A stretch of DNA of 64,000 bases from Macrostomum hystrix (GCA_950097015.1 CATNEN010000003.1:5766001-5830000), one strand, 5' to 3'. Positions 33,026 to 64,000 are shown, counted from the first letter of the stretch. Program-made: numbers and translations. The notes: generated from the sequence alone by a model not told the origin.

Positions 33026-34777
33026 CAGTTTTCAATAGCTGCTTAATAGCCGTTTTCAATGTCCAATATTGTTTTTATTCCTCGGATAAAAATTTATTGC
33101 GTTTAATCCTGCATCAGAAATGTATGAACGAAGATTGATAGTTGTGATGACTATCGATTTCTCTTGGAATTATATGCTGCTTACTCGGGATGATATTCTA
33201 ATAATCAATAAGCTTTGAGAATTTCCTGTGTGGTGCCTGAAATGTGTCAGCATTGATTTTGGAAACATTTTTGCAAAACCCCGTTAAAAATCGCAAATGG
33301 TTTAATGGATGCATTATCTAGCTACACCCCCTCGTATTTGTTAATCTCGACGCACAAAACTCAGACTGAGCCTCATTGGTCAGTTAGACTGGCTAATTCG
33401 AACATAAGAAAATGTAAATAAATTTCTGTTATAAAGCAGTAATTATTTAAGGCCGTGGAAGACAACCAGAAAGAATTTGGAAGATCGGACAAAACAATTT
33501 TGCTTTGAAGCACATCATTCGGACGCTCAAAGGTTTGTAAAGCTGCTCTCTGACTTTCTTGGTTGTCATTGGCAAAAATTGCTTGACAATCCAACAAACT
33601 TTCTCACCAGTATAATGTGGTACCAACCGGAATTGCGCTTAGGGGCTTCAGTGCCAAGTTCCTGAAAATTATAATCAGTTTTTGCCTGCAATAACATTCT
33701 TCCCTGAAACCGTCACTATAGCAATAGCTAGACTGAGACCCATTCACACAGGCAAGGAAAACTTAATTGATTAAAAACCTAGCTCACGCAGTATAAGAAA
33801 AAATACACGACAGCTCCCTTGGAGGTTCCGGGACAACTATTCTCCACTGTGGCACGACTTAGAACTGGACTAGCCAAAGCTAAACAGTTGTTCTGTTGCC
33901 CAGGTCTCCCACGCCAACACACACGCGCACAGGGAGCAATGCCCCTCGCAACTCATCAATATTTAATTATCAAGGTGGACTCAAGGTGCGGTTTCTTCTC
34001 CTGAGCATTGGTCCCATTGGGGAACAGCAATTACACTAAACTTGCAATATGACACCCCTGGATATATACCAAACCAAATGAGGCGAAATGACACCAAATT
34101 TTTATGACACCAAAAACCACAAATCGCGGATATATACCAGTGCAATGTGACAACCCACGCACAAGCCAATTTCCACGGCCCAATTCACATCTCCTATTTC
34201 ATCTCCTCTTCAAAATTTAGTTTAGCGATGCTTAGCTGCCTACTGAGAGCAAATCGAACAAAGACCACTAGAGTGCTCATTCCAGTTTGCCAGAAGAAAA
34301 AAGAAACTACATTCAGAGAAGCACAATCTGATTCAGTCCAAAGTCTAGTGCCACATAGCCATTTTCATAGTAATATTTTGCTGCCGTTCTAATAGAGTAA
34401 TAGTACCATCTATAAGATTCTAAGTCTAAGAGGGCGCAAAATAGCAACTTAACTTTTCATAGACTATTCAAAAGCGATATAAAAGGAGGATCATTCACTC
34501 TCAAGCGCCGTGCAGGAATGAATCCTTTCAACTTTACTCATCTGACTCTTCTTCTCACTCCTCAACATGATCGACAGGCCAGAAACACTTTTTCTGGAAC
34601 AGAAAGACACATGCGTCATGCGCAGGTCTATAAGTTCTTCCATGACCTAAAGCAATGACCTCAAAAATGAGTCCGCTGCTCGTCACCACCACTTCACTAA
34701 TAAAGCCGCTGTGGTGCATATGCCGATGATGATGTGCTGATTGATGCTTGGCGCCGGGCAGACTAGACAGGAGAGAG

Positions 34778-37700: not shown

Positions 37701-40700
37701 GATTAGATGAGGCTGTCTCAATGGATTAGATGAGGCTGTCTCCAGAGATTAGATGAGGCTGTCTCAATGGATTAGATGAGGCTGTCTCCAGAGATTAGAT
37801 GAGGCTGTCGCAATGGATTAGATGAGGCTGTTTCAATGGATTAGATGAGGCTGTCTCAATGGATTAGATGAGGCTGTCTCAATCGATTAGATGAGGCTGT
37901 CTCAATGGATTAGATGAGGCTGTCTCTAGAGATTAGATGAGGCTGTCTCAATGGATTAGATGAGGCTGTCTCAATGGATTAGATAGGCCGTCTCAATGGA
38001 TTAGATGAGGGTGTCTCCAGAGATTAGATGAGGCTGTCGCAATGGATTAGATGAGGCTGTCGCAATGGATTGATGAGGCTGTCTCAATGGATTAGATGAG
38101 GCTGTCTCCAGAGATTAGATGAGGCTGTCTCAATGGATTAGATGAGGCTGTCTCCAGAGATTAGATGAGGCTGTCTCAATGGATTAGATGAGGCTGTCTC
38201 CAGAGATTAGATGAGGCTGTCTCAATGGATTAGATGAGGCTGTCTCCAGAGATTAGATGAGGCTGTCTCAATGGATTAGATGAGGCTGTCTCCAGAGATT
38301 AGATGAGGCTGTCTCAATGGATTAGATGAGGCTGTCTCCAGAGATTAGATGAGGCTGTCGCAATGGATTAGATGAGGCTGTTTCAATGGATTAGATGAGG
38401 CTGTCTCAATGGATTAGATGAGGCTGTCTCAATCGATTAGATGAGGCTGTCTCAATGGATTAGATGAGGCTGTCTCTAGAGATTAGATGAGGCTGTCTCA
38501 ATGGATTAGATGAGGCTGTCTCAATGGATTAGATAGGCTGTCTCAATGGATTAGATGAGGCTGTCTCCAGGGATTAGATGAGGCTGTCGCAATGGATTAG
38601 ATGAGGCTGTTTCAATGGATTAGATGAGGCTGTCTCAATGGATTAGATGAGGCTGTCTCAATCGATTAGATGAGGCTGTCTCAATGGATTAGATGAGGCT
38701 GTCTCTAGAGATTAGATGAGGCTGTCTCAATGGATTAGATGAGGCTGTCTCAATGGATTAGATGAGGCTGTCTCAATGGATTAGATGAGGCTGTCGCAAT
38801 GGATTAGATGAGGCTGTCTCAATGGATTAGATGAGGCTGTCTCCAGAGATTAGATGAGGCTGTCTCAATGGATTAGATGAGGCTGTCTCCAGAGATTAGA
38901 TGAGGCTGTCTCAATGGATTAGATGAGGCTGTCTCCAGAGATTAGATGAGGCTGTCTCAATGGATTAGATGAGGCTGTCTCCAGAGATTAGATGAGGCTG
39001 TCGCAATGGATTAGATGAGGCTGTTTCAATGGATTAGATGAGGCTGTCTCAATGGATTAGATGAGGCTGTCTCAATCGATTAGATGAGGCTGTCTCAATG
39101 GATTAGATGAGGCTGTCTCTAGAGATTAGATGAGGCTGTCTCAATGGATTAGATGAGGCTGTCTCAATGGATTAGATAGGCCGTCTCAATGGATTAGATG
39201 AGGGTGTCTCCAGAGATTAGATGAGGCTGTCGCAATGGATTAGATGAGGCTGTCGCAATGGATTGATGAGGCTGTCTCAATGGATTAGATGAGGCTGTCT
39301 CCAGAGATTAGATGAGGCTGTCTCAATGGATTAGATGAGGCTGTCTCCAGAGATTAGATGAGGCTGTCTCAATGGATTAGATGAGGCTGTCTCCAGAGAT
39401 TAGATGAGGCTGTCTCAATGGATTAGATGAGGCTGTCTCCAGAGATTAGATGAGGCTGTCTCAATGGATTAGATGAGGCTGTCTCCAGAGATTAGATGAG
39501 GCTGTCTCAATGGATTAGATGAGGCTGTCTCCAGAGATTAGATGAGGCTGTCGCAATGGATTAGATAAGGCTGTCTCAACGGATTAGATGAGGCTGTCTC
39601 TAGAGATAAGATGAGGCTCTTGCAATGGACTTGATAAGGCTGTCTCAATGGTTTAGATGAGGCTGTCGCAATGGATTAGATGAGGCTGTCTCCAGAGATT
39701 AGATGAGGCTGTTGCAATGGATTAGATGAGGCTGTCTCAATGGATTAGATGAGGCTGTCTCAATGGAAAGGATGAGGCTGTCTCAATGGATTAGATGAGG
39801 CTGTCTCAATAGATTAGATGAGGCTGTCTCAATGGATTAGATAAGGCTGTCTCCAGAGATTAGATGAGGCTGTCTCAATGGTTTAGATAAGGCTGTCTCA
39901 TTGGATTAGATGAGGCTGTCTCAATAGATTAGATGAGGCTGTCTCAATGGATTAGATGAGGCTGTCTCAATGGATTAGATGAGGCTGTCTCAATGGATTA
40001 GATGAGGCTGTCTCTAGAGATTAGATGAGGCTGTCTCAATGGATTAGATGAGGCTGTCTCAATGGATTAGATAGGCTGTCTCAATAGATTAGATGAGGCT
40101 GTCTCAATGGATTAGATAGGCTGTCTCAATGGATTAGATGAGGCTGTCTCAATGGATTAGATGTGGCGGTCTCGAGAAATTAGATGGTGCGGTCTCAATG
40201 GATTAGATTAGGCTGTCTCAATGGATTAGATGAGGCTGTCTCAATGGATTAGATGAGGCTGTCTCAATGGATTAGATGAGGCTGTCTCAATGGATTAGAT
40301 GAGGCTGTCTCTAGAGATTAGATGAGGCTGTCTCAATGGATTAGATGAGGCTGTCTCAATGGATTAGATAGGCTGTCTCAATAGATTAGATGAGGCTGTC
40401 TCAATGGATTAGATAGGCTGTCTCAATGGATTAGATGAGGCTGTCTCAATGGATTAGATGAGGCTGTCTCAATGGATTAGATGAGGCTGTCTCAATGGAT
40501 TAGATGAGGCTGTCTCAATGGATTAGATGAGGCTGTCTCAATGGATTAGATGAGGCTGTCTCAATGGATTAGATGAGGCTGTCTCCAGAGATTAGATGAG
40601 GCTGTCTCAATGGATTAGATGAGGCTGTCTCCAGAGATTAGATGAGGCTGTCTCAATGGATTAGATGAGGCTGTCTCCAGAGATTAGATGAGGCTGTCTC

Positions 40701-43556
40701 ATAGGATTAGATGAGGCTGTCTTAAAGGATTAGATGAGGCTGTCTCCAGAGATTAGATGAGGCTGTCGCAATGGATTAGATGAGGCTGTCTCCAGAGATT
40801 AGATGAGGCTGTCTCAATGGATTTGATGAGGCTGTCTCAATGGATTAGATGAGGCTGTCTCAATGGATTAGATGAGGCTGTCTCCAGAGATTAGATGAGG
40901 CTGTCTCAATGGATTAGATGAGGCTGTCTCCAGAGATTAGATGAGGCTGTCTCAATGGATTAGATGAGGCTGTCTCCAGAGATTAGATGAGGCTGTCTCA
41001 ATGGATTAGATGAGGCTGTCTCCAGAGATTAGATGAGGCTGTCTCAATGGATTAGATGAGGCTGTCTCCAGAGATTAGATGAGGCTGTCTCAATGGATTA
41101 GATGAGGCTGTCTCCAGAGATTAGATGAGGCTGTCGCAATGGATTAGATGAGGCTGTTTCAATGGATTAGATGAGGCTGTCTCAATGGATTAGATGAGGC
41201 TGTCTCAATGGATTAGATGAGGCTGTCTCCAGAGATTAGATGAGGCTGTCTCAATGGATTAGATGAGGCTGTCTCCAGAGATTAGATGAGGCTGTCTCAA
41301 TGGATTAGATGAGGCTGTCTCCAGAGATTAGATGAGGCTGTCGCAATGGATTAGATGAGGCTGTCTCAATGGATTAGATGAGGCTGTCTCAATGGATTAG
41401 ATGAGGCTGTCTCTAGAGATTAGATGAGGCTGTCTCAATGGATTAGATGAGGCTGTCTCAATGGATTAGATGAGGCTGTCTCCAGAGATTAGATGAGGCT
41501 GTCTCAATGGATTAGATGAGGCTGTCTCCAGAGATTAGATGAGGCTGTCTCATAGGATTAGATGAGGCTGTCTTAAAGGATTAGATGAGGCTGTCTCCAG
41601 AGATTAGATGAGGCTGTCTCAATGGATTAGATGAGGCTGTCTCCAGAGATTAGATGAGGCTGTCTCAATGGATTAGATGAGGCTGTCTCCAGAGATTAGA
41701 TGAGGCTGTCGCAATGGATTAGATGAGGCTGTTTCAATGGATTAGATGAGGCTGTCTCAATGGATTAGATGAGGCTGTCTCAATGGATTAGATGAGGCTG
41801 TCTCCAGAGATTAGATGAGGCTGTCTCAATGGATTAGATGAGGCTGTCTCCAGAGATTAGATGAGGCTGTCTCAATGGATTAGATGAGGCTGTCTCCAGA
41901 GATTAGATGAGGCTGTCGCAATGGATTAGATGAGGCTGTCTCAATGGATTAGATGAGGCTGTCTCAATGGATTAGATGAGGCTGTCTCTAGAGATTAGAT
42001 GAGGCTGTCTCAATGGATTAGATGAGGCTGTCTCTATGGAATTGTGGTGGGTCTGAAGGGATAATTTAATGTGACTGGTCACGAATTTGGCTCGGCAGCT
42101 GCAGTTATGCAAGTGGCCATTGGCCTTTATATCTGCAACCTGACGATCCTAATTCTCCTGACGCCTTATGTACTGTGACGGACTGTGAACTTACTTTTGC
42201 TGATGCTGGAGAGGCGGTGAGCTGACTTCCCAGTGAAGTGAGCATGCATTCAGCATAAGCAGCTTAAATTATATGCATGTGATTCTTTGGACTAAACTGG
42301 GCTCTCTGAAATCAACTCAGTGCGCTGCCCGATATAGGGAGTGAAAAAACTAGCAAAGGTGTGACTCATGACATCACGATTGATACGATTGTCTCCTATT
42401 GGTCGCGAAACACAATGAATGCAGATCAGTTGATCCTCAATCCTGTTGCCATTTTAACATTTCCCATACACGTGCTTCAATGGGAAATGGTTAAAATGAC
42501 AACCCATGAACATTGGATATACGGAACTGGTGAAATGACACCCCTCCCTTCCATTGAGTTAGTGGAGAGATGAGGTCGGTCTCAATGAATTAGATGTGGC
42601 AGTCTCCAGAGATTAGATAAGGCGGTCGAATGGATTAGATGTGGCCGTCTGCAGAGATCAGATGAGGCTATCGCAATGGATTAGATGAGGCTGTCTCCAG
42701 AGATTTGATGAGGCTGTCTCAATGGATTTGATAAGGCTGTCTCAATGGATTAGATGAGGCTGTCTCATAGGATTAGATGAGGCTGTCTTAAAGGATTAGA
42801 TGAGGCTGTCTCCAGAGATTAGATGAGGCTGTCGCAATGGATTAGATGAGGCTGTCTCCAGAGATTAGATGAGGCTGTCTCAATGGATTTGATGAGGCTG
42901 TCTCAATGGATTAGATGAGGCTGTCTCATAGGATTAGATGAGGCTGTCTTAAAGGATTAGATGAGGCTGTCTCCAGAGATTAGATGAGGCTGTCGCAATG
43001 GATTAGATGAGGCTGTCTCCAGAGATTAGATGAGGCTGTCTCAATGGATTTGATGAGGCTGTCTCAATGGATTTGATAAGGCTGTCTCAATGGATTAGAT
43101 GAGGCTGTCTCAATGGATTAGATGAGGATGTCGCAATGGATTAGATGAGGCTGTCTCCAGAGATTAGATGAGGCTGTCGCAATGGATTAGATGAGGCTGT
43201 CTCCAGAGATTAGATGAGGCTGTCACAATGGATTAGATGAGGCTGTCTCAATGGATTTGATGAGGCTGTCTCAATGGATTTGATAAGGCTGTCTCAATGG
43301 ATTAGATGAGGCTGTCTCAATGGATTAGATGAGGCTGTCTCAGTCGATTAGATGAGGCTGTCTCAATGGATTAGATGAGGCTTTCTCAATGGATTAGATG
43401 AGGCTGTCTTCAGAGATTAGATGAGGCTGTCTCAATGGATTAGATGGGGCGGTCCCAGAGATTCGATGTGGCGGTCTCAATGGATTGGACTTTCAGTCTG
43501 CCAATCAGTCTTTATCGCCACTTTCATCCACTCCAAGGCTCTGAAATGGCCGCTAT
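34778..43556 (+). repeat. Left arm: 23-bp satellite (GATTAGATGAGGCTGTCTCAATG / ...CTCCAGA)n interspersed with ~160-bp GAAATGACACC-rich modules
   Basis: Modules at ~34778-35270, ~36211-36655 and ~42470-42580. Satellite fills 35275-36120, 36660-42040 and 42580-43485. Confidence 0.97.
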
Positions 43557-44733
43557 GAAGCACTAGAGTGCGGCAGTGGAAACTCGGATGTTTCACTCTC
43601 CAAGTCTAACCAATTTCCTGCACTTACTTTCAGTCTGCCCGCCAGTCTTTTACAGGGATAGAGTTAGGAAGAAGGAGCTAGATAGAGACAAATATGATGA
43701 AGATGAAGAAGCTGGAAAATACGAGTATTTCTCCAAGATGGCAGAAATTGGAGATCGCTGTGTGGTTCCTGGCGCAGCCCACTTCCCCATCCCACCCCAG
43801 CCCAGTCAATGTCTAGTTGCATCCTTGAATGGCACAGCATGAAGTGTTTCCGATTATTGTGTCGGTGGCTGTTGCTTAAGGCTGTTGGTGCGACTTTCAA
43901 CAAACTAGAAATTTAGCACGTTTGAGCCAACTTGTGATTTTCCCTTTCCAAAGGGAATCTTTTTTGAGAGCACACTCAATCCATAGCGTGCCGTGAAATT
44001 TGACTTTTTGGCTCAGTCAGATCGATGGGAAAATGAGGGAGACAATAACTTGAGCTCCAGTGATCCTGTCTTCTTTGTGATTACGCAATTGAATTCCCAT
44101 CTTTAAGCTCAGCTAAAAATTTCAACATGCCATTCGCACATTATATCATGGCGCATATACATACCTGAGCCTGCCGTGAAATGGGATTTATGGGTACAAA
44201 GGGTCGAGAGGTTAATATGAAGGGATCAGGGAGACATTGATTTGATCTCGCGTGGTCGTTGTTTGCTTTGAGATTACGCAACGCACAGCTCATCATGAAC
44301 ACGAAACTAAAATGCAAAATAAGCAGAAGAGAAATCGAAAATGAAACAGTTTCCTATATTTTGGGAAGAGTTGCCACACATTTAAGGCACCCATTGCGCA
44401 ACATTAGAAGCATCCCACTTCCAGTTTATTTATAGGTCGTATCTAGGACTCCAAAAGTTTCTCACCCACGTCTGAGTTTTACCCTCGTACATAGGATCAG
44501 CACAGATGATCTTGTATTAGGTATGGAGTATGAGAATGTTCTGTCCAGTTTTAGTTTGTTACGAGCGGAATTCCTCCTCCGGAGGAAGTTGAGGGGATAG
44601 AACTTTTTTGAGGATCTTAGAAATTGAAATTTCACAATTAAAATAGCCTATAGCCTTCCTCGGAAAATTTCCGATTTTCCTATATAAGTTTCAACGCTGA
44701 GTTGCCAGTATTCTAGGAGGAGATGTCGAACTG

Positions 44734-45799: not shown

Positions 45800-46118
45800 A
45801 TATTTTGAATATTGTATTCTATTGCCTTGAAGAACGCGTGCACAGGGATTGGGAAGGTAGTGATTTGAACAAGATTCTGAGGATGGGTGTTTGAAATGGG
45901 GTGGGTGAAATGGGCGGGTGAAAGTGGGTGTGTGTGGGAGTGTGACCCACCTAAATGGACTGAGGAGATCGTGGGATCTGGGATAAGAGAACCTGGAATA
46001 TAATTTCTCTCGATTTCTATTGGCTGAGATCGTGTCATGACCTTAGAGCAAAGCCTGACATTGGCACGAAGCTAAAGGCGAGAAAGCATACTACCAGAGC
46101 CATCAGATGCGCTCGTAG

Positions 46119-46194: not shown

Positions 46195-49100
46195 ATGACG
46201 AGTAGCCTAAGCTTTTTGCAACTGTTGCTTGGTGAGCCTGAGTCAAACAATGAAGCAACTGCCGCCAAGCCCAAGCCAAGAGCCGGAAAGCTCTACCTGT
46301 GCCCATTCGATGGGTGCACTAAGCCCATCAGCAATTCTCGACTGAGCCAGCATGTGCGCAAGAAGCACACGAAGAAGCTGGAGAAGCTGGCCTTGGACGG
46401 CGCGCTGTCCGATGATGAAGCTCGCAAGACCATTGTGGCAGCCATCAAGCTCCACACGCAGAACTTGACTGCTGGGCCGCTGCTCACAACAGTGAAGGCC
46501 TGCCGCTTTTGCGGAATCCACTTCAGCAATTCCGAGCTGCTGAACGCGCACGTCCGCAGGCAACATGCTGCCGAGAGAAGTGCTCAGCAAGCTGCTGAGA
46601 AGGAAGCTGTCATTCAACAGATTCGGCAGCTCAAGAAGCAGGCTCCAGCAGATCACGCCTCATCGGAGGTCATTGATGACTTGTGCATATACTGGAGGAG
46701 CTTCGATGGCGGCCGCTACAAGCCGTCCACCATCAGGCAGATGCGGTGCTACCTCTCTCGTCTGATGCGCCTGCTCGATGTCCCCACAATCGAGGAGCTG
46801 GTAGCCGAGGACAAGCGAGACGACATCAGCGACTACCTCGGTAATCTGTCCTACTGCATCCTCAAGCAGACAGTGTCGGCTCTGGTGAAGGTTGGCAGCT
46901 TCTTGTCCAAGCGGCGGCGCCAGCGCCTGTCAGAAGCCGGCTCACTGGAACAGCTGCATTCGTTCAGGGAGTCCACCGCTGACTGGACCAAGAGCTCCCT
47001 CAGGCTACGCGATGAATATCGCGCAATCCTCGCTGACAAGCAGGAGGACGAACTCCTGACGGCAGTCGAGGTTTTGGAAGTATTCGCCATGCACAAGCAA
47101 GTCCTGCAAATGGCGCGAGAGTGCAAGGACAGCAAGAAGCGAAGGTAAGTTTTGCGTTTCTTCTTTCATCTCAGTGTATTTTAGTCAGTGAAGGAGCTGC
47201 AAATAATATCACCTGTCCTGCACATCGGATCACAAATTATTCACACAAAATATTTATAACTAAACCATTCAATGGGCTGCTACTCCATTCAGGGCCCGCT
47301 ATTCCCTTTCTGACCATTTAATTCAGAGCTCATATTTTGAAAAAAAAAAATATCTGGCCAGACCTCAGATTTCGGGCTTTCGGGCCGGGCCATATTTCCT
47401 CATTTTTGGTCTTGGCCTGGATATTTCTTCTTTCCGGCGCATTAACCTGTTTCACAATATGCTTCCCAATCTTGTCACAATACTTAGGACTCTGGGCATG
47501 TTGGCAATTGGCATGACCATTTGCTTCGGCGATGGAAATGCCAACCGGCAAGATGTCGCCACCGAGTGCAAGGTCAGCGATGTGAAAAAGTGGCTTCAAC
47601 GCCCCACTGGCCTGCTGCTGGTTGCCGACCACAAGTCTTCAGCATCTCACGGCTCTGCTGCAGCCAGTCTGGCGCCAGTCTGCGACCTCGCCATCGAGGC
47701 ATTGAAGCTTCGCTTCGCGCAGCGGCCGGGCGACGAGGAACGGGCATTTATCTACCCGTATGGCAGCTTCGACCGCCTCTTTGCGGTCCACCGCACCCAC
47801 TACTCGCCTCTCCTGAAACGGGTGACGGCGACTAAATTCCGCAAGTGGGTGGAGACACAAGGGCTGGAACGCGCCACCGCAGATGAGCAGCGCAGGCTGG
47901 CTGACCACCTGCTTCACTCAGAAGGTGTGCAGCGGCGTCATTATCAGGTAAACAATCATAGAAGCATTTTTCTTTCTCATGAAATGAACGACATGAGATA
48001 CTTGTATGTTTGAGAACGAATAAGGAATGAATGAGAATGAGAATGTAGGATATTTGCATGGAAATTTTATTGTACATTAATAGTATAAGGAAATTGAATG
48101 TTCATGTGCACTTTGTTATGTGTAAAGTTCATTGAACTTCTTTTCATCCAATGCAACTTTTCATTATATACAGATTCACACCATGCGGTATCGATCGGAC
48201 AACGGCGAGCTGGCTCGGAGGCTTGTTCAGTCGGGCACTGAGGCTGCTGCTTCGTCCGACATTTTTGAGCCGCCAGCAATGGACGACGAGACGCTGTTGA
48301 AGGAGGCAGCCAGCTTTGCTGCTTTCATCAATGGCGGCGACAGTCATGGTTAGTCATCACGAGTATTAGCATATGCACCCTATTTTTCTCATTGAAAGGG
48401 ATTGTCAGGTAGTAGACAGTGGATTGGAGAAGTAGAACTTGACACTGAAGTCTATTGTTTCATTCTTACATTTTAGAAAATCCATTTTCCTATCCGTATA
48501 GAATACATGAGTATTTGAAATCATAATGTTACAAAAAATTGTTGCTCCACGAAAAAAAAAGCCAGGCCGAGAAGTTCGCTTTGCACAGCCTTTTTTAAAG
48601 TAAAAAGCCAACTGCAAAAGCCAATAGTGCTATCCCTCTCTGTCCACTCTGCCCTCTCCATGCTTCTCCCTCCTCATACTCGTACTTCCCCTGGCTCTCA
48701 GTTTCAGGCTTTATCTCTCTCTCTCATCACTATCCTTCTGTTCTTCATTTTAACTCTCTGCCTGCGGGTGTATTTACATATTGTAGTTCATCTCTGCTTA
48801 ATTCACATTTCTACACTTGTATGCGATTCATATGCCAGTTCACAATATTTGTAATTACAAAGGGTGTCAATTTGAGCGCATATTTCTGCCCTGAGTATCA
48901 GTCTCTGTGTGGCTGCCATTCTATACTCCCTGCATTGAAATCTGTATGGTAGAAACATGTCGCTCAGAAGAGACATTGCTTTACTTTATGATTATAGGAA
49001 ACGCTGGAAACAAACTTATTTAACCCGCTTTGCGGAGGTTGGATAGCACGCTCGATTGCATTTTTCTCATTGCCATTCACAGGAATTCCGTCCGAAATCG

Positions 49101-51394
49101 GAGCAAGCCCGTCCACCGCCGCCACTGCCGCCGATTCGGCTGACTACGCCTTCGCCCCTGCAGAGGACGACTTTGCTGCCGCCGAAGTAGAATTTGCTGC
49201 CGGAACCTGCGTTGTCGATGACTGCAGCGACATGTTCGAGACTTTTGACGCCGAAGTCTTCTTGGCGGCCGATGACTGCGACATCATCGAGCCGATCTGC
49301 TCCACCGGGGTTGGCGCTGCGGCCACGAAGAAGATCGCCGCGCCACAGAAACGCAAGGCGCCCAAGGCAGCGTCGAAGGCAGATGCATCAGCCGCAAAGC
49401 GACGGGCGGTGGCCGCTGAGTTTGCGGCCCAAGATCGCCTGAAAGCGGCATCGACGAAGGCGAAGGCGAGCAGCCGCGCCGCCGTTACCGCCGCCTCTGC
49501 CGTGTCGACCACAGGGGCTGCCGCTGCCGCCGCCACCTCGGCCTGTACTGACCCCCTTGCAGGCGCTGCGGCCACGAAGAAGATCACCGCGCCACAGAAA
49601 CGCAAGGCGCCCAAGGCAGCGTCGAAAGCAAATGCGGCAGCCGCAAAGCGGGCGGTGGCCGCTGAGTTTGCGGCCCAAGATCGCCTGAAAGCGGCATCGA
49701 CCAAGGCGAAGGCGAGCAGCCGCGCCGCCGTTACCGCCGCCTCTGCCGTGTCGACCACAGGGGCTGCCGCTGCCGCCGCCACCTCGGCCTGTACTGACCC
49801 CCTTGCAGGCGCTGCGGCCACGAAGAAGATCACCGCGCCACAGAAACGCAAGGCGCCCAAGGCAGCGTCGAAAGCAAATGCGGCAGCCGCAAAGCGGGCG
49901 GTGGCCGCTGAGTTTGCGGCCCAAGATCGCCTGAAAGCGGCATCGACCAAGGCGAAGGCGAGCAGCCGCGCCGCCGTTACCGCCGCCTCTGCCGTGTCGA
50001 CCACAGGGGCTGCCGCTGCCGCCGCCACCTCGGCCTGTACTGACCCCCTTGCAGGCGCTGCGGCCACGAAGAAGATCACCGCGCCACAGAAACGCAAGGC
50101 GCCCAAGGCAGCGTCGAAAGCAAATGCGGCAGCCGCAAAGCGACGGGCGGTGGCCGCTGAGTTTGCAGCCCAAGATCGCCTGAAAGCGGCATCGACCAAG
50201 GCGAAGGCGAGCAGCCGCGCCGCCGTGACAGCCGCCTCTGCCGTGTCGGTCACTGGGGCTGCCGCTGCCGCCGCCACCTCGGCCTGCACCGACTCCGCCT
50301 CCGAGGCCACCGCAGTGGCACACGATGACACCAAGGCGAGCAGCCACGCCGACGTTGCCGCCACCGCCATCGCAACCGACGACGCCGCCCAGGCTGCAGG
50401 CGAGCCAGCTGCCGTCGACACCGCCCAGGCTGCAGGCGAGCCAGCTGCCGTCGACACCGCCCAGGCTGCAGGCGAGCCAGCTGCCGTCGACACCGCCCAG
50501 GCAGCAGGCGAGCCAGCTGCCGTCGACACCGCCCAGGCTGCAGGCGAGCCAGCTGCCGTCGACACCGCCCAGGCTGCAGCCGTCGACACCGCCCATGCTG
50601 CAGGCGAGCCAGCTGCCGTCGACACCGCCCATGCTGCAGGCAAGCCTGCTGCCGTCGACACCGCCAATGCTGCAGGCGAGCCAGCTGCCGTCGACACCGC
50701 TTATGCTGCAGGCAAGCCTGCTGCCGTCGACACCGCCCAGGCTGCAGGCGAGCCAGCTGCCGTCGACACCGCCCAGGCTGCAGGCGAGCCAGCTGCCGTC
50801 GACACCGCCCAGGCAGCAGGCGAGCCAGCTGCCGTCGACACCGCCCAGGCTGCAGGCGAGCCAGCTGCCGTCGACACCGCCCAGGCTGCAGCCGTCGACA
50901 CCGCCCATGCTGCAGGCGAGCCAGCTGCCGTCGACACCGCCCATGCTGCAGGCAAGCCTGCTGCCGTCGACACCGCCCAGGCTGCAGGCGAGCCAGCTGC
51001 CGTCGACAACGCCCAGGCTGCAGGCGAGCCTGCTGCCGTTGACACCGCCCATGCTGCAGGCAAGCCTGCTGCCGTCGACACCGCCCATGCTGCAGGCGAG
51101 CAAGCGGCGGATGGCTACAAGATGGCTGACGTCGTAGTAGCCAAAATTGCGGGCTATTCACCATGGCCAGCTCTTGTATGTCCATCCCCCCGCGGCGGCT
51201 TTATTCTCCGGGGCCAACGAGTGCACGTGGCATTCCTGGAGCCAGGCCGCCCGCGCGCCTGGGTGCCAGTGGCGGATGTCTACCTGTTCACTGGTGAAGC
51301 GCCACAGTGTCAGCCGGCGGAGCTTCAGGAGGCTTACAACGAAGCGCTAAACCTCCTGAAAGTACCTGCACAGCAGCGCTTTGATCTTCAGTAA
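46195..51394 (+). CDS. Tyrosine recombinase fused to two C2H2 zinc fingers (N-term), Lys/Ala-rich repeats and a C-terminal PWWP domain; exons 46195-47144, 47488-47947, 48174-48348, 49083-51394 (~1298 aa)
   Basis: C2H2 fingers 'CPFDGC...HVRKKH' and 'CRFC...HVRRQH'. SAM-like core-binding segment 'YWRSFDGGRYKPSTIRQM'. Catalytic motifs 'NANRQD' (R), 'VADHKS' (K), 'TATKFRK' (HxxR-equivalent), 'LLHSEGVQRRHY' (H, Y). PWWP 'DVVVAKIAGYSPWPALV...VHVAFL...RAWV'. Three GT-AG introns give one open frame (950+460+175+2312 = 3897 nt). Confidence 0.85.
49313..50292 (+). repeat. Coding tandem repeat: 4 x 246-249 bp (82-83 aa Lys/Ala-rich unit containing PQKRKAPK)
   Basis: Unit starts at 49313, 49562, 49808 and 50054. 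Confidence 0.95.
50378..51100 (+). repeat. Coding tandem repeat: ~20 x 36 bp (AAVDTAQAAGEP)
   Basis: Visible in DNA and protein, always in frame. Confidence 0.95.
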
Positions 51395-52016
51395 TTTTTG
51401 GAAGTGACTGGGACAAACTGAGACAAGTGTATAGCTGCTCTATTTTACGCTTCTATTTCTACACTATTATACTATTCTGCTATTTCTACTATAGCAATTG
51501 TAAATTTCCTTAGCATTGTAATGCACAGAAAATGAGTTTTTGTTGCACAAACGATGATTGTGTGTTTGCAATTGGTCAATGTGCAATGCTTCCATTGCGA
51601 AGATGGGAAAGGATGTGACTGATTAAAACTTCACATTTCAAAAAAAAGCGGGTCATCAATTTGAACAGGGCACCAAGAGTCTGCAACAAAATCTCTAACT
51701 GAAATAGTTGCTTGTCGCACAAATTGTGTTTTAATGCAGCTGCTTATATGCTACTTTTACTGCATTTTCTTCACATTTTTTCATTTTAATTTCTACACTA
51801 ATTAGTACAAAATGTACTGCGTTGGCAACGCTTCTTTATGACCACAAGTCAATGACTACTTCTGTGTATGTGCACTCACATTTTACTCCATAATTTGCCA
51901 AACTTGACTTGTGAAAGTCAGCTCACTCTTCGCTAAACAATGCAAAAGTAATTTTTCAAAGCTGTCAAGGAGTGGAAAGACTTCGTCTTTGATCTCAAAA
52001 GTGCTCTTCAATATTT

Positions 52017-55000
52017 ATAGCGGCCCTTTCAGAGCCTTGGAGTGGATGAAAATGGCGATAAAGACTGACCGACAAGACTGAAAGTCCAATCATTGAGACC
52101 ACCTCATCTAATCCATTGCGACAGCCTCATCTAATCCATTGGGACAGCCTCTGGAGACGGCCACATCTAATCCATTGAGACAGCCTCATCCTTTCCATTG
52201 AGACAGCCTCATCTTTTCCATTGAGACCGCCTCATCTAATCCATTGAGACAGCCTCATCTAATCTACTGAGACAGCCTCATCTAATCCATTGAGACAGCC
52301 TCATCTAATCTCTAGAGACAGCCTCATCTAATCCATTGAGACAGCCTCATCTAATCCATTGCGATAGCCTCATCTAATCCATTGAGACAGCCTCATCTAA
52401 TCTCTGGAGACAGCCTCATCAAATCCATTGAGACAGCCTCATCTAATCTCTGGAGACAGCCTCATCTAATCCATTGAGACAGCCTCATCTAATCCATTGA
52501 GACAGCCTTATCTAATCCATTGCGACAGCCTCATCTAATCTCTGGAAACAGCCTCATCTAATCCATTGAGACTGACCTCATCTCTCCACTAACTCAATGG
52601 AAGGGAGGGGTGTCATTTCACCAGTTCCGTTTATCCAATGTTCATGGGGTGTCATTTTAACATTTTCCCATAGAAGCTCGTGTATCAGGTAGCTGGGTGC
52701 TTTTTCAAACCACCTCTCTAACATTCTCTCTCCTCCATTATTCTATTCGCTTTTGCTGTCATTCTACTCTCGCATTTTATATTTCTCATCTAATCCATTT
52801 AGACAGCCTCATCTAATCCATTGAGACAGCCTCATCTAATCCATCGAGACAGCCTCATCTAATCCATTGAGACAGCCTCATCTAATCCATTGAGACAGCC
52901 TCATCTAATCTCTAGAGACAGCCTCATCTAATCCATTGAGACAGCCTCATCTAATCCATTGCAACAGCCTCATCTAATCTCTGGAGACAGCCTCATCTAA
53001 TCTATTGAAACAGCCTCATCCTTTCCATTGAGACAGCCTCATCTTTTTCTTTGAGACCGCCTCATCTAATCTCTGAAGACAGCCTCATCTAATCCATTTA
53101 GACAGCTTCATCTAATCCATTGAGACAGCCTCATCTAATCTCTGGAGACAGCCTCATCTAATCTCTGGAGACAGCCTCATCTAATCCATTGAAACAGCCT
53201 CATCCTTTCCATTGAGACAGCCTCATCTTTTTCATTGAGACCGCCTCATCTAATCCATTGAGACAGCCTCATCTAATCGATTGAGACAGCCTCATCTAAT
53301 CCATTGAGACAGCCTCATCTAATCCATTGAGACAGCCTCATCTAATCCATTGAGACAGCCTAATCTAATCCATTGAGACCGCACTATCTAATTTCTCGAG
53401 ACCGCCACATCTAATCCATTGAGACAGCCTCATCTAATCTATTGAGACAGCCTCATCTAATCCAATGAGACAGCCTTATCTAATCCATTGAGACAGCCTT
53501 ATCTAATCCATTGCGACAGCCTCATCTAATCTCTGGAGACAGCCTTATCTAATCCATTGAGACCGACCTCATCTCTCCACTAACTGAAAGGAAGGGAAGG
53601 GTGTCATTTCACCAGTTTCATATATCCAATGTTCATGGGGTGTCATTTTAACCTTTTCCCATAGAAGCTCGTGTATCAGGTAGCTAAGGTCATTTCACTG
53701 TCTATTAGCTCAATGGAAAATGGGGTGTCATTTCACCGTCTATTAGCTCAATAGAAAATGTGGTGTCATTTCACCAGTTCCATATATCCAATGTTCATGG
53801 GGTGTCATTTTAACCTTTTCCCATTGAAGCTCGTGTATCAGGTAGCTGGGTGCTTTTTCAAACCACCTCTCTAACATTCTCTCTCCTCCATTATTCTATT
53901 CTCTTTTGCCGTCATTCTACTCTCGCATTTTATATTTCTCATCTAATCCATTTAGACAGCCTCATCTAATCCATTGAGACAGCCTCATCTAATCCATTGA
54001 GCCAGCCTCATCTAATCCATTGAGACAGCCTCATCTAATCCATTGAGACAGCCTCATCTAATCCATTGAGACAGCCTAATCTAATCCATTGAGACCGCAC
54101 TATCTAATTTCTCGAGACCGCCACATCTAATCCATTGAGACAGCCTCATCTAATCTATTGAGACAGCCTCATCTAATCCAATGAGACAGCCTTATCTAAT
54201 CCATTGAGACAGCCTTATCTAATCCATTGCGACAGCCTCATCTAATCTCTGGAGACAGCCTTATCTAATCCATTGAGACCGACCTCATCTCTCCACTAAC
54301 TGAAAGGAAGGGAAGGGTGTCATTTCACCAGTTTCATATATCCAATGTTCATGGGGTGTCATTTTAACCTTTTCCCATAGAAGCTCGTGTATCAGGTAGC
54401 TAAGGTCATTTCACTGTCTATTAGCTCAATGGAAAATGGGGTGTCATTTCACCGTCTATTAGCTCAATAGAAAATGTGGTGTCATTTCACCAGTTCCATA
54501 TATCCAATGTTCATGGGGTGTCATTTTAACCTTTTCCCATTGAAGCTCGTGTATCAGGTAGCTATAAGGTCATTTCACTGTCTATTAGCTCAATGGAAAA
54601 TGGGGTGTCATTTCACTGTCTATTAGCTCAATAGAAAATGTGGTGTCATTTCACCAGTTCCATATATCCAATGTTCATGGGGTGTCATTTTAACCTTTTC
54701 CCATTGAAGCTCGTGTATCAGGTAGCTGGGTGCTTTTTCAAACCACCTCTCTAACATTCTCTCTCCTCCATTATTCTATTCTCTTTTGCCGTCATTCTAC
54801 TCTCGCATTTTATATTTCTCATCTAATCCATTTAGACAGCCTCATCTAATCCATTGAGACAGCCTCATCTAATCCATTGAGCCAGCCTCATCTAATCCAT
54901 TGAGACAGCCTCATCTAATCCATTGAGACAGCCTCATCTAATCCATTGAGACAGCCTCATCTAATCCATTGAGACAGACTCATCTAATCCATTGAGACAG

Positions 55001-58000
55001 CCTATCTAATCCATTGAGACAGCCTCATCTAATCCATTGAGACAGCCTCATCTAATCTCTAGAGACAGCCTCATCTAATCTCTAGAGACAGCCTCATCTA
55101 ATCCATTGAGACAGCCTCATCTAATCCATTGAAACAGCCTCATCTAATCTCTGAAGACAGCCTCATCTAATCCATTGAGACAGCCTCATCTAATCGATTG
55201 AGACAGCCTCATCTAATCCATTGAGACAGCCTCATCTAATCCATTGAGACAGCCTCATCTAATCCATTGAGACAGCCTAATCTAATCCATTGAGACCGCA
55301 CCATCTAATTTCTCGAGACCGCCACATCTAATCTATTGAGACAGCCTCATCTAATCCAATGAGACAGCCTTATCTAATCCATTGCGACAGCCTCATCTAA
55401 TCTCTGGAGACAGCCTTATCTAATCCATTGAGACCGACCTCATCTCTCCACTAACTGAAAGGAAGGGAAGGGTGTCATTTCACCAGTTCCGTATATCCAA
55501 TGTTCATGGGGTGTCATTTTAACCTTTTCCCATAGAAGCTCGTGTATCAGGTAGCTAAGGTCATTTCACTGTCTATTAGCTCAATGGAAAATGGGGTGTC
55601 ATTTCACTGTCTATTAGCTCAATAGAAAATGTGGTGTCATTTCACCAGTTCCGTATATCCAATGTTCATGGGGTGTCATTTTAACCTTTTCCCATAGAAG
55701 CTCGTGTATCAGGTAGCTATAAGGTCATTTCACTGTCTATTAGCTCAATGGAAAATGGGGTGTCATTTCACTGTCTATTAGCTCAATAGAAAATGTGGTG
55801 TCATTTCACCAGTTCCGTATATCCAATGTTCATGGGGTGTCATTTTAACCTTTTCCCATTGAAGCTCGTGTATCAGGTAGCTGGGTGCTTTTTCAAACCA
55901 CCTCTCTAACATTCTCTCTCCTCCATTATTCTATTCTCTTTTGCTGTCATTCTACTCTCGCATTTTATATTTCTCATCTAATCCATTTAGACAGCCTCAT
56001 CTAATCCATTGAGACAGCCTCATCTAATCCATTGAGCCAGCCTCATCTAATCCATTGAGACAGCCTCATCTAATCCATTGAGACAGCCTCATCTAATCCA
56101 TTGAGACAGCCTAATCTAATCCATTGAGACCGCACTATCTAATTTCTCGAGACCGCCACATCTAATCCATTGAGACAGCCTCATCTAATCTATTGAGACA
56201 GCCTCATCTAATCCAATGAGACAGCCTTATCTAATCCATTGAGACAGCCTTATCTAATCCATTGCGACAGCCTCATCTAATCTCTGGAGACAGCCTTATC
56301 TAATCCATTGAGACCGACCTCATCTCTCCACTAACTGAAAGGAAGGGAAGGGTGTCATTTCACCAGTTTCATATATCCAATGTTCATGGGGTGTCATTTT
56401 AACCTTTTCCCATAGAAGCTCGTGTATCAGGTAGCTAAGGTCATTTCACTGTCTATTAGCTCAATGGAAAATGGGGTGTCATTTCACCGTCTATTAGCTC
56501 AATAGAAAATGTGGTGTCATTTCACCAGTTCCATATATCCAATGTTCATGGGGTGTCATTTTAACCTTTTCCCATTGAAGCTCGTGTATCAGGTAGCTGG
56601 GTGCTTTTTCAAACCACCTCTCTAACATTCTCTCTCCTCCATTATTCTATTCTCTTTTGCCGTCATTCTACTCTCGCATTTTATATTTCTCATCTAATCC
56701 ATTTAGACAGCCTCATCTAATCCATTGAGACAGCCTCATCTAATCCATTGAGCCAGCCTCATCTAATCCATTGAGACAGCCTCATCTAATCCATTGAGAC
56801 AGCCTCATCTAATCCATTGAGACAGCCTCATCTAATCCATTGAGACAGACTCATCTAATCCGTTGAGACAGCCTATCTAATCCATTGAGACAGCCTCATC
56901 TAATCCATTGAGACAGCCTCATCTAATCTCTAGAGACAGCCTCATCTAATCTCTAGAGACAGCCTCATCTAATCCATTGAGACAGCCTCATCTAATCCAT
57001 TGAAACAGCCTCATCTAATCTCTGAAGACAGCCTCATCTAATCCATTGAGACAGCCTCATCTAATCGATTGAGACAGCCTCATCTAATCCATTGAGACAG
57101 CCTCATCTAATCCATTGAGACAGCCTCATCTAATCCATTGAGACAGCCTAATCTAATCCATTGAGACCGCACCATCTAATTTCTCGAGACCGCCACATCT
57201 AATCTATTGAGACAGCCTCATCTAATCCAATGAGACAGCCTTATCTAATCCATTGCGACAGCCTCATCTAATCTCTGGAGACAGCCTTATCTAATCCATT
57301 GAGACCGACCTCATCTCTCCACTAACTGAAAGGAAGGGAAGGGTGTCATTTCACCAGTTCCGTATATCCAATGTTCATGGGGTGTCATTTTAACCTTTTC
57401 CCATAGAAGCTCGTGTATCAGGTAGCTAAGGTCATTTCACTGTCTATTAGCTCAATGGAAAATGGGGTGTCATTTCACTGTCTATTAGCTCAATAGAAAA
57501 TGTGGTGTCATTTCACCAGTTCCGTATATCCAATGTTCATGGGGTGTCATTTTAACCTTTTCCCATTGAAGCTCGTGTATCAGGTAGCTGGGTGCTTTTT
57601 CAAACCACCTCTCTAACATTCTCTCTCCTCCATTATTCTATTCTCTTTTGCCGTCATTCTACTCTCGCATTTTATATTTCTCATCTAATCCATTTAGACA
57701 GCCTCATCTAATCCATTGAGACAGCCTCATCTAATCCATTGAGCCAGCCTCATCTAATCCATTGAGACAGCCTCATCTAATCCATTGAGACAGCCTCATC
57801 TAATCCATTGAGACAGACTCATCTAATCCATTGAGACAGCCTATCTAATCCATTGAGACAGCCTCATCTAATCCATTGAGACAGCCTCATCTAATCTCTA
57901 GAGACAGCCTCATCTAATCTCTAGAGACAGCCTCATCTAATCCATTGAGACAGCCTCATCTAATCCATTGAAACAGCCTCATCTAATCTCTGAAGACAGC

Positions 58001-59870
58001 CTCATCTAATCCATTGAGACAGCCTCATCTAATCGATTGAGACAGCCTCATCTAATCCATTGAGACAGCCTCATCTAATCCATTGAGACAGCCTCATCTA
58101 ATCCATTGAGACAGCCTAATCTAATCCATTGAGACCGCACCATCTAATTTCTCGAGACCGCCACATCTAATCTATTGAGACAGCCTCATCTAATCCAATG
58201 AGACAGCCTTATCTAATCCATTGCGACAGCCTCATCTAATCTCTGGAGACAGCCTTATCTAATCCATTGAGACCGACCTCATCTCTCCACTAACTGAAAG
58301 GAAGGGAAGGGTGTCATTTCACCAGTTCCGTATATCCAATGTTCATGGGGTGTCATTTTAACCTTTTCCCATAGAAGCTCGTGTATCAGGTAGCTAAGGT
58401 CATTTCACTGTCTATTAGCTCAATGGAAAATGGGGTGTCATTTCACTGTCTATTAGCTCAATAGAAAATGTGGTGTCATTTCACCAGTTCCGTATATCCA
58501 ATGTTCATGGGGTGTCATTTTAACCTTTTCCCATAGAAGCTCGTGTATCAGGTAGCTAAGGTCATTTCACTGTCTATTAGCTCAATGGAAAATGGGGTGT
58601 CATTTCACTGTCTATTAGCTCAATAGAAAATGTGGTGTCATTTCACCAGTTCCGTATATCCAATGTTCATGGGGTGTCATTTTAACCTTTTCCCATAGAA
58701 GCTCGTGTATCAGGTAGCTATAAGGTCATTTCACTGTCTATTAGCTCAATGGAAAATGGGGTGTCATTTCACTGTCTATTAGCTCAATAGAAAATGTGGT
58801 GTCATTTCACCAGTTCCGTATATCCAATGTTCATGGGGTGTCATTTTAACCTTTTCCCATTGAAGCTCGTGTATCAGGTAGCTGGGTGCTTTTTCAAACC
58901 ACCTCTCTAACATTCTCTCTCCTCCATTATTCTATTCTCTTTTGCTGTCATTCTACTCTCGCATTTTATATTTCTCATCTAATCCATTTAGACAGCCTCA
59001 TCTAATCCATTGAGACAGCCTCATCTAATCCATTGAAACAGCCTCATCTAATCTCTGAAGACAGCCTCATCTAATCCATTGAGACAGCCTCATCTAATCG
59101 ATTGAGACAGCCTCATCTAATCCATTGAGACAGCCTCATCTAATCCATTGAGACAGCCTCATCTAATCCATTGAGACAGCCTAATCTAATCCATTGAGAC
59201 CGCACCATCTAATTTCTCGAGACCGCCACATCTAATCTATTGAGACAGCCTCATCTAATCCAATGAGACAGCCTTATCTAATCCATTGCGACAGCCTCAT
59301 CTAATCTCTGGAGACAGCCTTATCTAATCCATTGAGACCGACCTCATCTCTCCACTAACTGAAAGGAAGGGAAGGGTGTCATTTCACCAGTTCCGTATAT
59401 CCAATGTTCATGGGGTGTCATTTTAACCTTTTCCCATAGAAGCTCGTGTATCAGGTAGCTAAGGTCATTTCACTGTCTATTAGCTCAATGGAAAATGGGG
59501 TGTCATTTCACTGTCTATTAGCTCAATAGAAAATGTGGTGTCATTTCACCAGTTCCGTATATCCAATGTTCATGGGGTGTCATTTTAACCTTTTCCCATA
59601 GAAGCTCGTGTATCAGGTAGCTATAAGGTCATTTCACTGTCTATTAGCTCAATGGAAAATGGGGTGTCATTTCACTGTCTATTAGCTCAATAGAAAATGT
59701 GGTGTCATTTCACCAGTTCCGTATATCCAATGTTCATGGGGTGTCATTTTAACCTTTTCCCATTGAAGCTCGTGTATCAGGTAGCTGGGTGCTTTTTCAA
59801 ACCACCTCTCTAACATTCTCTCTCCTCCATTATTCTATTCTCTTTTGCTGTCATTCTAATCTCGCATTTT
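52017..59870 (-). repeat. Right arm: reverse-complement of the left-arm satellite and modules, arranged as ~8 higher-order units
   Basis: (CATTGAGACAGCCTCATCTAATC)n alternating with GGTGTCATTTC modules. The junction motif GACCTCATCTCTCCACTAACT recurs at ~52575, 53565, 54280, 55435, 56315, 57306, 58273 and 59340. Confidence 0.97.
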
Positions 59871-61099
59871 TTATCTTCACTGCTTGATTCGCTCTCTCAT
59901 TGTCTCATTATTTTACTGTCTTCTGCCATTCAGCTCTTCTGTCCCTCTCTCTATCATTCTCTAGCTTCCTGCATCTCTCCCTCGCTCACTCTGCCCTCCT
60001 GGCTCTCCTAGTACAATGTTTAGCGTTCAGTTTGCTGTTTAGGTATATTTGCTACATATGTAATTCATTTAGCTTTTTGATCTGCACTTGCGAGCCACTT
60101 TTGTCAACTCTCATGCTGAGACACGTGCGATTCAAGTTCCAATTCTGTTGATTTTTGCTGAAAGTAGCACAGAGCGTGGTGAAACTCCCTTTTGTGGGTT
60201 TCCCCTCGAAAAAAGTTTTATTGACTGTTTTCAATATTGTTTCATTCCTGACTTGACTCGGTGTCACAATGCAAGTGTCATTTTGCATTTTTGCAAGCGT
60301 GACATATATCCGCTTTGTAGGTGTCACTTTAAAGGTTTGTTAGTGACTATATCCAGGGCAGAAAAAAAATGGGTGTCATTTTAAACGTTTGGTGCACTGC
60401 CCCGTGTGAAGGGGTCCGGGCTTCCAGTGCAATCGAATCCGATGGGAAAGCGACAGAACTCATCTCGAACTACCACAGTCCATTCCCACCGGCCACTGCA
60501 GTCGGCGATGCTGATGTGACAACCTGGGTGAAGATTCTCGCTCCAACCTCGTCAAAACTAAATGCACGTGCTCCGGAATATTAGCTATAATTTGGGCACA
60601 GTTTTACAGTCAGAATCACGCAAACCAAAAACCATATTGGAAAAAGCGGAGCAGAAAAAAGAGGCCAAGAGTGGCTGTCCCAATTCAGCGAACCAACTGG
60701 CAAAAGCTTTAAACACGAAAAACAGAAAATTGAACTTTGCTTCGGCGGATGCAGCAACCGAAGAATTGGAAGTCAGTTAGGAGAAGAAAATAATCCGCCT
60801 AAAGAGTTCTTCTTCTGCTCTACAGTTAGCATCGACCCGCCGGATCGATGGAGCGGATAGAAGTTCATCTGTGCTCATAATTGGAGAATCTTTTGTCACG
60901 CACGGAGTGGCAACGATTAAAGGCCGCATGGCGCCTCCCAATTTGACATATGACACTTGTCATGAAAATTAAATTAAATGACAGCCCGGATAGGGCGACA
61001 GCAGCAGTCAATCTGGCACCAGATGAAGACGGAAGAAAATCGAAGCGCTGCATAAATTTGCAGGAAAGCGGGCTAAGAGGCTGCGCCACGATAAACGCC

Positions 61100-63849: not shown

Positions 63850-64000
63850 GTGAGTTGTACAGTAGTTGCTGAGTTCATTTAGCTTATTCCATGGATGACA
63901 GTCTATGCACAGTGATAGTGTTAACTACCTGATGCTGGCTGAGAAAATTAGGACAAGTGTGCAACTCCAGATATAAAATGTCTATACTAGTCTCGTAGGA

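Follow-up and report, generated by a model that had tools for sequence, protein, structure and literature searches.

A 64,000-nucleotide (nt) stretch of the Macrostomum hystrix genome, hereafter the window, raises the question of whether four separate open reading frames (ORFs) on one strand form a single gene, and what kind of element such a gene would belong to. The window corresponds to C3:5766001-5830000 of a 220-Mb, 42-contig assembly, on which all genome searches were made; folding and protein searches were done exon by exon. An earlier note on this DNA had joined the four ORFs through GT-AG introns of phases 2, 0 and 1 into one frame of 1298 codons, and had proposed a fusion of zinc fingers, a tyrosine recombinase and a PWWP domain. 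Most probably, the locus is indeed one intact spliced gene, belonging to a Crypton-like DNA transposon that carries a tyrosine recombinase and no reverse transcriptase. In order, its predicted product consists of two C2H2 fingers, a core-binding domain, a catalytic domain with the residues R-K-R-H-Y, an Ala/Lys-rich in-frame linker and a C-terminal PWWP.

The splice sites and open exons can be read directly from the DNA (Table 1). All three introns have GT..AG borders with a pyrimidine-rich tract before the acceptor AG, and neither of the split codons, AG/G (AGG) and G/GA (GGA), is a stop. The exons sum to 3897 nt, equal to 1298 codons and a stop, and a TATAAAT lies upstream of exon 1 at ~46118. 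At the level of genomic sequence, the four-exon gene of the earlier note is confirmed as intact and stop-free, with splice sites where proposed. On eight uninterrupted homologues, the peptides of exons 1 and 2 align next to each other, at most a few residues apart. In the ORF of paralog L029, amino acids (aa) 29-315 of exon 1 align to residues 745-1032 and aa 4-136 of exon 2 to 1034-1171; in that of L030, the two peptides fall on 651-952 and 954-1109, and in homologue P0001 on 1-262 and 263-411. Exon 1 shares 42-49% identity with exon 1 of paralogs. Exon 3 is required for frame continuity from exon 2 to exon 4 and is collinear with exon 3 of the paralog, but weakly so (score 40), with LTKRLVTEG facing LARRLVQSG and ...SRIN facing ...AFIN; the acceptor and the phase-1 donor are shared.

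A search of the assembly with exon 2 gave ~30 matches, of which the best were the four copies of one relative at C2:9.09 Mb, C12:1.38 Mb, C14:1.41 Mb and C39:6.64 Mb. Amino-acid identity between this four-copy relative and the window gene is 60% in exon 2, 42% in exon 1 and ~30% in the PWWP. In the copy L014, on the reverse strand, exon 1 bears fingers, exon 2 has 153 codons, exon 3 is short and the last exon contains repeat linkers and ends in a PWWP. Its splice sites occur at homologous codons and in the same phases 2, 0 and 1 (...GACCG/GTGAGT, ...TACCAG/GTAAGA and ...GCCGCCA/GTGAGT). DNA similarity between the two elements is found in the coding parts only, with introns and other non-coding DNA being unrelated, so the ends of the window element are not mappable by homology.

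The predicted structures of exons 1 and 2 support a two-domain tyrosine recombinase fold, with a core-binding and a catalytic domain. The AlphaFold model of exon 1 has a predicted local distance difference test (pLDDT) score of 79. VIA-align comparison of its aa 154-273 matched the Brujita integrase (Int; Z 9.7), the N-domain of a Haloarcula recombinase (9.1) and residues 4-99 of XerA (9.0), followed by XerD (8.8), Ndc10 (7.9) and lambda Int (7.5). These recombinase matches came from VIA-align; Foldseek with the whole exon 1 model returned helical noise only. The exon 2 model, built from a 10-sequence alignment with a mean pLDDT of 72.9, was compared with 48,161 Protein Data Bank (PDB) representatives, and the top 26 were all tyrosine recombinases or type IB topoisomerases before a drop to Z 2.7. 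The best match was XerA (Z 8.1, root-mean-square deviation 4.2, 131 residues aligned, XerA residues 119-273). Next came XerD (Z 7.2 and 7.0), the integron integrase IntI (6.6), Leishmania topoisomerase I (6.5) and Cre (6.0), with the Crypton-derived QRICH1 (4.7), Flp (4.5) and lambda Int (4.4) lower down. Foldseek of exon 2 likewise placed XerA and Cre on top, weakly (probability 0.85, E 0.18), and the neighbours in the ESM protein language model were the Phage_integrase and ResT/TelK clusters (0.91-0.94). Exon 1 and exon 2 match residues 4-99 and 119-273 of one solved chain in that order, which supports the splice between them.

The putative catalytic residues of exon 2 lie in the motifs GNANR (R20), DHKS (K49), TATKFRK (R118) and LLHS..RRHY (H143 and Y152). 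An alignment of 16 family members bears out the earlier statement that all five are retained, as each is kept in 14-16 of the 16, within the conserved patterns GNA-x-R, (E/D)HK(T/S), T-x-x-x-x-R-x-x-x-E-T and H...Y. In the exon 2 model, these conserved motifs fall at a helix start, in a beta hairpin, at a helix start and in the C-terminal tail, respectively; the catalytic assignment is made from motif order and predicted secondary structure, without residue-level superposition. The replacement of the His of HxxR, three positions before R118, also stands and proves to be family-wide: the window has Thr, relatives have S, N, T, K or R, and His occurs in none of the 16 members. This position is also variable in type IB topoisomerases and telomere resolvases. 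In the four-copy family it is Ser, and because that family evidently moved recently, the substitution would be compatible with activity.

Sequence searches gave no recombinase match. Pfam, run with its default settings and again at E 10, found neither PF00589, PF02899, PF12012 (DUF3504) nor any other recombinase family in the window and nine relatives, and no recombinase family in five external homologues. Phmmer and profile searches of PDB sequences were likewise negative for recombinases. Word-index protein searches with the finger-plus-recombinase region of a paralog, an eight-sequence profile and the PWWP region of the window returned nothing useful, blanks that reflect the word index and length filter and not absence. 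Of the fold sought by profile or structure, the structural part is therefore positive (XerA for the catalytic domain, Z up to 9.7 for the core-binding domain) and the profile part negative.

The C-terminal PWWP matches Pfam PF00855 above cut-off (33.5 bits against 25.6, E 6.2e-8, profile positions 2-91 of 93). Among PDB sequences it matches the PWWPs of MSH6 (1.2e-5) and NSD2 (2.4e-4) and also those of HDGF and LEDGF, the LEDGF alignment being weak (E 0.02-0.03). Compared with MSH6 and NSD2, the window has the Tyr of GY, the second Trp of P-W-W-P (here SPWP) and the Phe of V-x-F, positions that we take to be the methyl-lysine aromatic cage, with numbering as in NSD2 and LEDGF. W20, F43 and W52 are invariant in five paralog PWWPs, and the first aromatic position is Glu in one paralog. 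From this alignment, the three cage positions of the window PWWP look retained.

That the PWWP belongs to the same protein as the recombinase is supported by comparison between lineages, since the order N-domain, recombinase, PWWP is kept on one strand in the window and in at least eight other lineages among the loci examined, three of which encode it as a single ORF, and since the closest mobile relative keeps all three intron positions and phases. The three single ORFs belong to distant, intronless paralogs (L030:1483-5748, 1422 aa; L029:3854-8446, minus strand, 1531 aa; L031:1923-5267, 1115 aa), each with zinc fingers, N-domain, catalytic motifs, repeat linker and a Pfam PWWP (E 1e-11 to 2e-14). 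No PWWP was found within the ~3.9 kb examined downstream in two more distant lineages, at C24:5.80 Mb and C3:12.47 Mb. Paralogs L029-L032 have long N-terminal tandem repeats and CHHC/C2H2-like fingers, including a U11-48K-type match in L030. L031 and L034 have an identical PWWP, which implies that the L031 family also has recent copies.

The linker of exon 4 consists largely of repeats, with four units of 246 bp (49313-50293; 97% identical) and 21 of 36 bp (50376-51105), the latter arranged in a 312-bp higher-order repeat (95%). All linker periods are multiples of 3, both in the window (246 and 36 bp) and in the four-copy family (30 and 48 bp), unlike the non-coding satellites compared, which have periods of 23, 19, 116, 13 and 14 bp. 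The partial record of the Macrostomum lignano homologue P0003 ends in Lys/Ala-rich tandem repeats, with no PWWP seen there.

At the other end of the protein, zinc finger 1 matches Pfam C2H2_ASCIZ (30.9 bits against a cut-off of 25, E 3.9e-7) and is conserved in homologues P0001-P0005 and in paralogs. Zinc finger 2 falls below cut-off for zf-C2H2_4 (23.4 bits against 27) and for zf-C2H2; its spacing was read directly, and C103 and H124 are nearly invariant in the family alignment. The Cys and His columns of the fingers are kept in relatives.

The four-copy family is, judging by its copies, certainly mobile. Located on four contigs with unrelated flanks, the copies are 98-99.9% identical (99.2-99.9% in the compared end segments of ~1 kb each) and share the ends GGGGGGTTTG... 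and ...CATAGGGG, the exact ends being read as GGGGGGTTTGTATGACGCC... on the left and ...CGCTAACATAGGGG on the right. Their length of 11.3-19.1 kb differs solely by that of an internal 116-bp satellite, and arrays and the recombinase gene are their only content. There is a G-run at both ends, and the C39 copy sits inside a G-run of a host satellite unit. No inverted repeats were found at the ends; about 30 bp inside the left end lies an 8-bp palindrome with a 7-bp spacer (TTACGCAT GAGATAT ATGCGTAA). Short direct repeats at the ends have been described as a signature of Cryptons (PMC3212892; PMC13465315).

In the window, the gene lies between two long inverted arms. Between 34.7 and 59.9 kb, no ORFs of at least 150 aa occur besides the recombinase gene, except for low-complexity frames, and the 8.5-kb core contains no further coding ORF. 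A search of the assembly found the arm satellite at the window locus only, and a host satellite flanking the gene by chance was rejected on that ground. Each 162-bp arm unit contains GTGTCATTT-N10-GTATATCC, forward in the right arm (52154-59874) and reversed in the left (35263-43486). The same two motifs, 9 nt apart and in the same order, are present in each 116-bp unit of the four-copy element. Otherwise the two satellites are unalignable (local score 20 against 17.6 ± 2.4 for shuffles), and a rough estimate puts the chance of the shared motif at ~1e-7. The GTGTCA(T/C) and TATATCC cluster seen outside both arms recurs in the last 130 bp of the four-copy element. In the 10-kb loci of nine other paralogs, the bipartite motif was not found. 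We read GTGTCATTT-N9/10-GTATATCC as a candidate binding site of the recombinase of this branch; if so, the arms would be part of the element, which would then span ~34.0-60.4 kb.

By analogy with the Cre, Xer and Crypton systems, from which the following steps are drawn, the enzyme would excise the element as a circle and, through two exchanges of strands within a short core of identical sequence, insert it again. The satellite arms are filled with repeated GTGTCATTT-N9/10-GTATATCC sites, to which the zinc fingers or the core-binding domain may bind. The PWWP would tether the complex to nucleosomal DNA and a methylated histone tail, probably H3 methylated at lysine 36 (H3K36), and so bias target choice; most characterised PWWPs bind H3K36me2/3. 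The Lys/Ala-rich linker (...QKRKAPKAASK...) might serve as a nuclear localisation signal or as a non-specific DNA-binding tail. The division of labour put forward in the earlier note, with fingers reading element DNA and the PWWP picking H3K36-methylated chromatin, may hold by the same analogy. More tentatively, such "PWWP-Cryptons" could possibly be an undescribed animal clade, in which an own H3K36me-type reader would choose sites and DNA-binding modules would bind GTGTCATTT-N9/10-GTATATCC motifs amplified into private kilobase satellites. If true, the family would act as a transposon that targets itself and would at the same time generate satellite DNA.

Among known systems, Cryptons (CryptonA/I/F/S; Goodwin et al. 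2003; Kojima and Jurka 2011, PMC3212892) come closest, in a comparison made by description and structure. They share with the window gene a tyrosine recombinase as sole enzyme, with no reverse transcriptase or DDE transposase; their genes may have introns, and they occur in animals. The ends of the four-copy relative are short direct repeats and not terminal inverted repeats, and Crypton-derived QRICH1 as well as Ndc10, the latter with its match to the N-domain, are among the structural matches. Animal Cryptons have been described without a C-terminal domain and without terminal repeats (PMC3212892). To this the window gene adds N-terminal C2H2 fingers, a C-terminal PWWP and kilobases of internal satellite, and it differs in showing no DUF3504 or Phage_integrase signal even at E 10 and in lacking the His of the R-H-R-Y tetrad. 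The predicted fold is that of the prokaryotic tyrosine recombinases of the Xer, Cre and lambda Int type, with two domains, a lysine in the beta hairpin and residues at the R, K, R, H/W and Y positions; the window protein differs from them by an identity below 20%, by Thr or Ser in place of His-II and by the added fingers and PWWP. Foldback elements of the NOF/Rehavkus type likewise have a central gene between multi-kilobase inverted short-repeat arrays, but carry a DDE (Mutator-like) transposase, whereas here the sole gene encodes a putative tyrosine recombinase and the array of the mobile relative is one-sided. A tyrosine recombinase is also found in the eukaryotic retrotransposons DIRS, Ngaro, PAT and VIPER, of which DIRS are flanked by inverted terminal repeats; the core and arms of the window contain no reverse transcriptase or RNase H ORF. 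Spliceosomal introns are retained in the genomic copies, which argues against an RNA intermediate, and a DIRS-like retroelement was rejected on both grounds.

The chromodomain integrases of chromoviruses (Ty3/gypsy) already combine a transposon enzyme with a histone reader, and human immunodeficiency virus (HIV) borrows a host PWWP through LEDGF/p75. In both, an integration enzyme is coupled to a Royal-family reader that biases targets, as would be the case here. Both differ in using DDE integrases of retroelements, and in HIV the PWWP is that of a host cofactor, whereas in the window gene the reader appears fused to a tyrosine recombinase. A text search of the literature gave no paper pairing PWWP with Crypton, and in the paper examined that names both PWWP and tyrosine recombinase, the terms stand in unrelated contexts. 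This agrees with the earlier remark that a described tyrosine recombinase family with the C2H2-recombinase-PWWP architecture is not known to its author; by its sequence, the locus appears Crypton-like in kind, with an architecture not found described. New in the present analysis are the spliced branch of the family, the conservation of its introns in a mobile relative, two-domain structural evidence and the shared satellite motif. A fusion of tyrosine recombinase and PWWP would be an independent solution to chromatin targeting, reached by another class of enzymes within a group of transposons about which little is known, and gives a testable model for target choice by Crypton-type elements. 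It could also be of interest for genome engineering, for which no natural Cre-like enzyme that includes a chromatin tether is available. The bipartite motif, conserved in otherwise unrelated satellites, would tie the recombinase family to the way in which private satellite arrays arise.

The reading of the locus as an intact transposon gene has to be weighed against several points. The exon 2 model is weak in its C-terminal third, the last 40 residues having a pLDDT below 55, and the canonical His of HxxR is missing. Because no sequence search gives a recombinase match, the recombinase assignment draws on a predicted structure of moderate confidence together with motifs. The splice model comes from genomic comparison, in which exon 3 shows the weakest similarity to the paralog of all the pieces. 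The near-identical linker repeats are recent expansions and could mean relaxed constraint. Finally, the window gene is present as one copy, flanked on both sides by long inverted arms.

The last of these points leads to the possibility that the gene is an inert relic, open yet silent or inactive, and trapped in a foldback-like inverted duplication made by the host. We consider this unlikely, while taking it seriously. One full copy of the gene exists in the 220 Mb, and just one relative exceeds 80% identity, namely a truncated 5' fragment from the window lineage (L033 4522-5400, C2:6920521-6921399; 84-95% nt identity), which extends from the equivalent of window position 46076 to just past the exon 1 donor and has one TGA and an internal deletion of ~180 bp. 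These observations would suit a relic, but 3.9 kb of coding sequence in four exons has no stops or frameshifts, the splice sites are intact, and so, it appears, are the putative catalytic and PWWP cage positions. The arms, moreover, carry an element-specific motif and not a genome-wide satellite.

The same single copy and fragment could point to a domesticated host gene, that is, a chromatin protein derived from a Crypton recombinase like ZMYM2-4, QRICH1, KCTD1 and yeast Ndc10. Such an origin is also suggested by the position of the locus among ordinary animal genes, by its introns and by the structural matches to QRICH1 and Ndc10, yet it seems improbable. All putative catalytic residues are kept, unlike in DUF3504 proteins (PMC3212892), the recently moved family has the same intron-bearing structure, and the gene lies inside inverted arrays of a motif common to the mobile relative. 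Nor is a conserved orthologue visible, as the best match outside the assembly, among 1.84 billion representatives, has 31% identity. An exhaustive HMMER search gave five true external relatives, one being a Macrostomum lignano cluster and four coming from assembly or metagenome contigs; the M. lignano homologues are hypothetical proteins with ~27% identity. A sixth match, P0006, is a bacterial surface protein and was rejected as spurious.

It is very improbable that 49083-51394 is a separate gene, or a chance frame in GC-rich repeats, with the end of the recombinase in exon 2 or exon 3. Conservation of exon 3 is poor, and several frames on both strands are open across the repeats, but in at least nine lineages the PWWP lies 3' of the recombinase and shares its strand (in three within one uninterrupted ORF), the phase of the intron between exons 3 and 4 is kept in the paralog, the linker periods keep to multiples of three, and the PWWP-bearing frame opens just 13 nt upstream of the exon 4 acceptor.

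Table 1. Features of the predicted gene, its surroundings in the window and the C2 copy of the four-copy relative. Positions are those of the window unless a contig is given; a slash marks an exon border.
Feature	Position	Strand	Details
Exon 1	46195-47144	+	316 codons + 2 nt; ATG start, two zinc fingers, predicted recombinase N-terminal domain; stop-free
Zinc finger 1	46294-46380	+	aa 34-62, C-x4-C-x11-H-x4-H; Pfam match aa 34-61
Zinc finger 2	46498-46566	+	aa 102-124, classical C-x2-C-x12-H-x4-H
Predicted core-binding (N-terminal helical) domain	46654-47013	+	exon 1 aa 154-273; AlphaFold2 pLDDT ~85-95
Intron 1	47145-47487	+	phase 2; GTAAGT..AG; exon 1 ends ...CGAAG/GTAAGT
Exon 2	47488-47947	+	153 codons, predicted recombinase catalytic domain; preceded by ...ATACTTAG/; ends ...TATCAG/GTAAAC
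Putative catalytic residues in exon 2	R20 47546-48; K49 47633-35; T115/R118 47840-42; H143 47915-17; Y152 47942-44	+	
Intron 2	47948-48173	+	phase 0; GTAAAC..AG; position conserved in four-copy paralog
Exon 3	48174-48348	+	58 codons + 1 nt, after putative catalytic Tyr; preceded by ...TATACAG/; ends ...GTCATG/GTTAGT
Intron 3	48349-49082	+	phase 1; GTTAGT..CAG; same phase in paralog
Exon 4	49083-51394	+	769 codons, Ala/Lys-rich repeat linker and PWWP; TAA stop 51392-51394; preceded by ...CCATTCACAG/
PWWP	51128-51355	+	exon 4 aa 682-757; Pfam PF00855
Left inverted arm	34772-43486		23-bp satellite interspersed with 162-bp units (Tandem Repeats Finder)
Right inverted arm	52154-59874		mirror of left arm; inverted blastn 88-94% against left
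Inner unique inverted repeat	43505-43559 and 52014-52068		55 nt, 95%; closes arms on the inside
Outer left motif cluster	34034-34155	-	ATGACAC / GGATATA; possible element end region
Outer right motif cluster	60260-60390	+	GTGTCA(T/C) and TATATCC; possible element end region
Four-copy element, C2 copy	C2:9078506-9096319		satellite array on one side only
Rhodopsin-type G-protein-coupled receptor	1785-2570		
Adenylate cyclase, exons spread	~3968-24277	-	
Ras-like exon	29871-30329		
Ionotropic glutamate receptor exon	63393-63869		

Satellites also occur among the neighbouring genes. Many unrelated ones with periods of 13-24 bp are found at 1-898, 10488-22358 and 30335-31312, and the genome seems unusually rich in private micro-satellite-like arrays. 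The adenylate cyclase exons at 3968-7594 and 23360-24277 on the minus strand (Guanylate_cyc E 5e-22, AC_N E 1e-8) are ~16 kb apart, and the interval between them holds at least eight different short-period satellites (13-24 bp).

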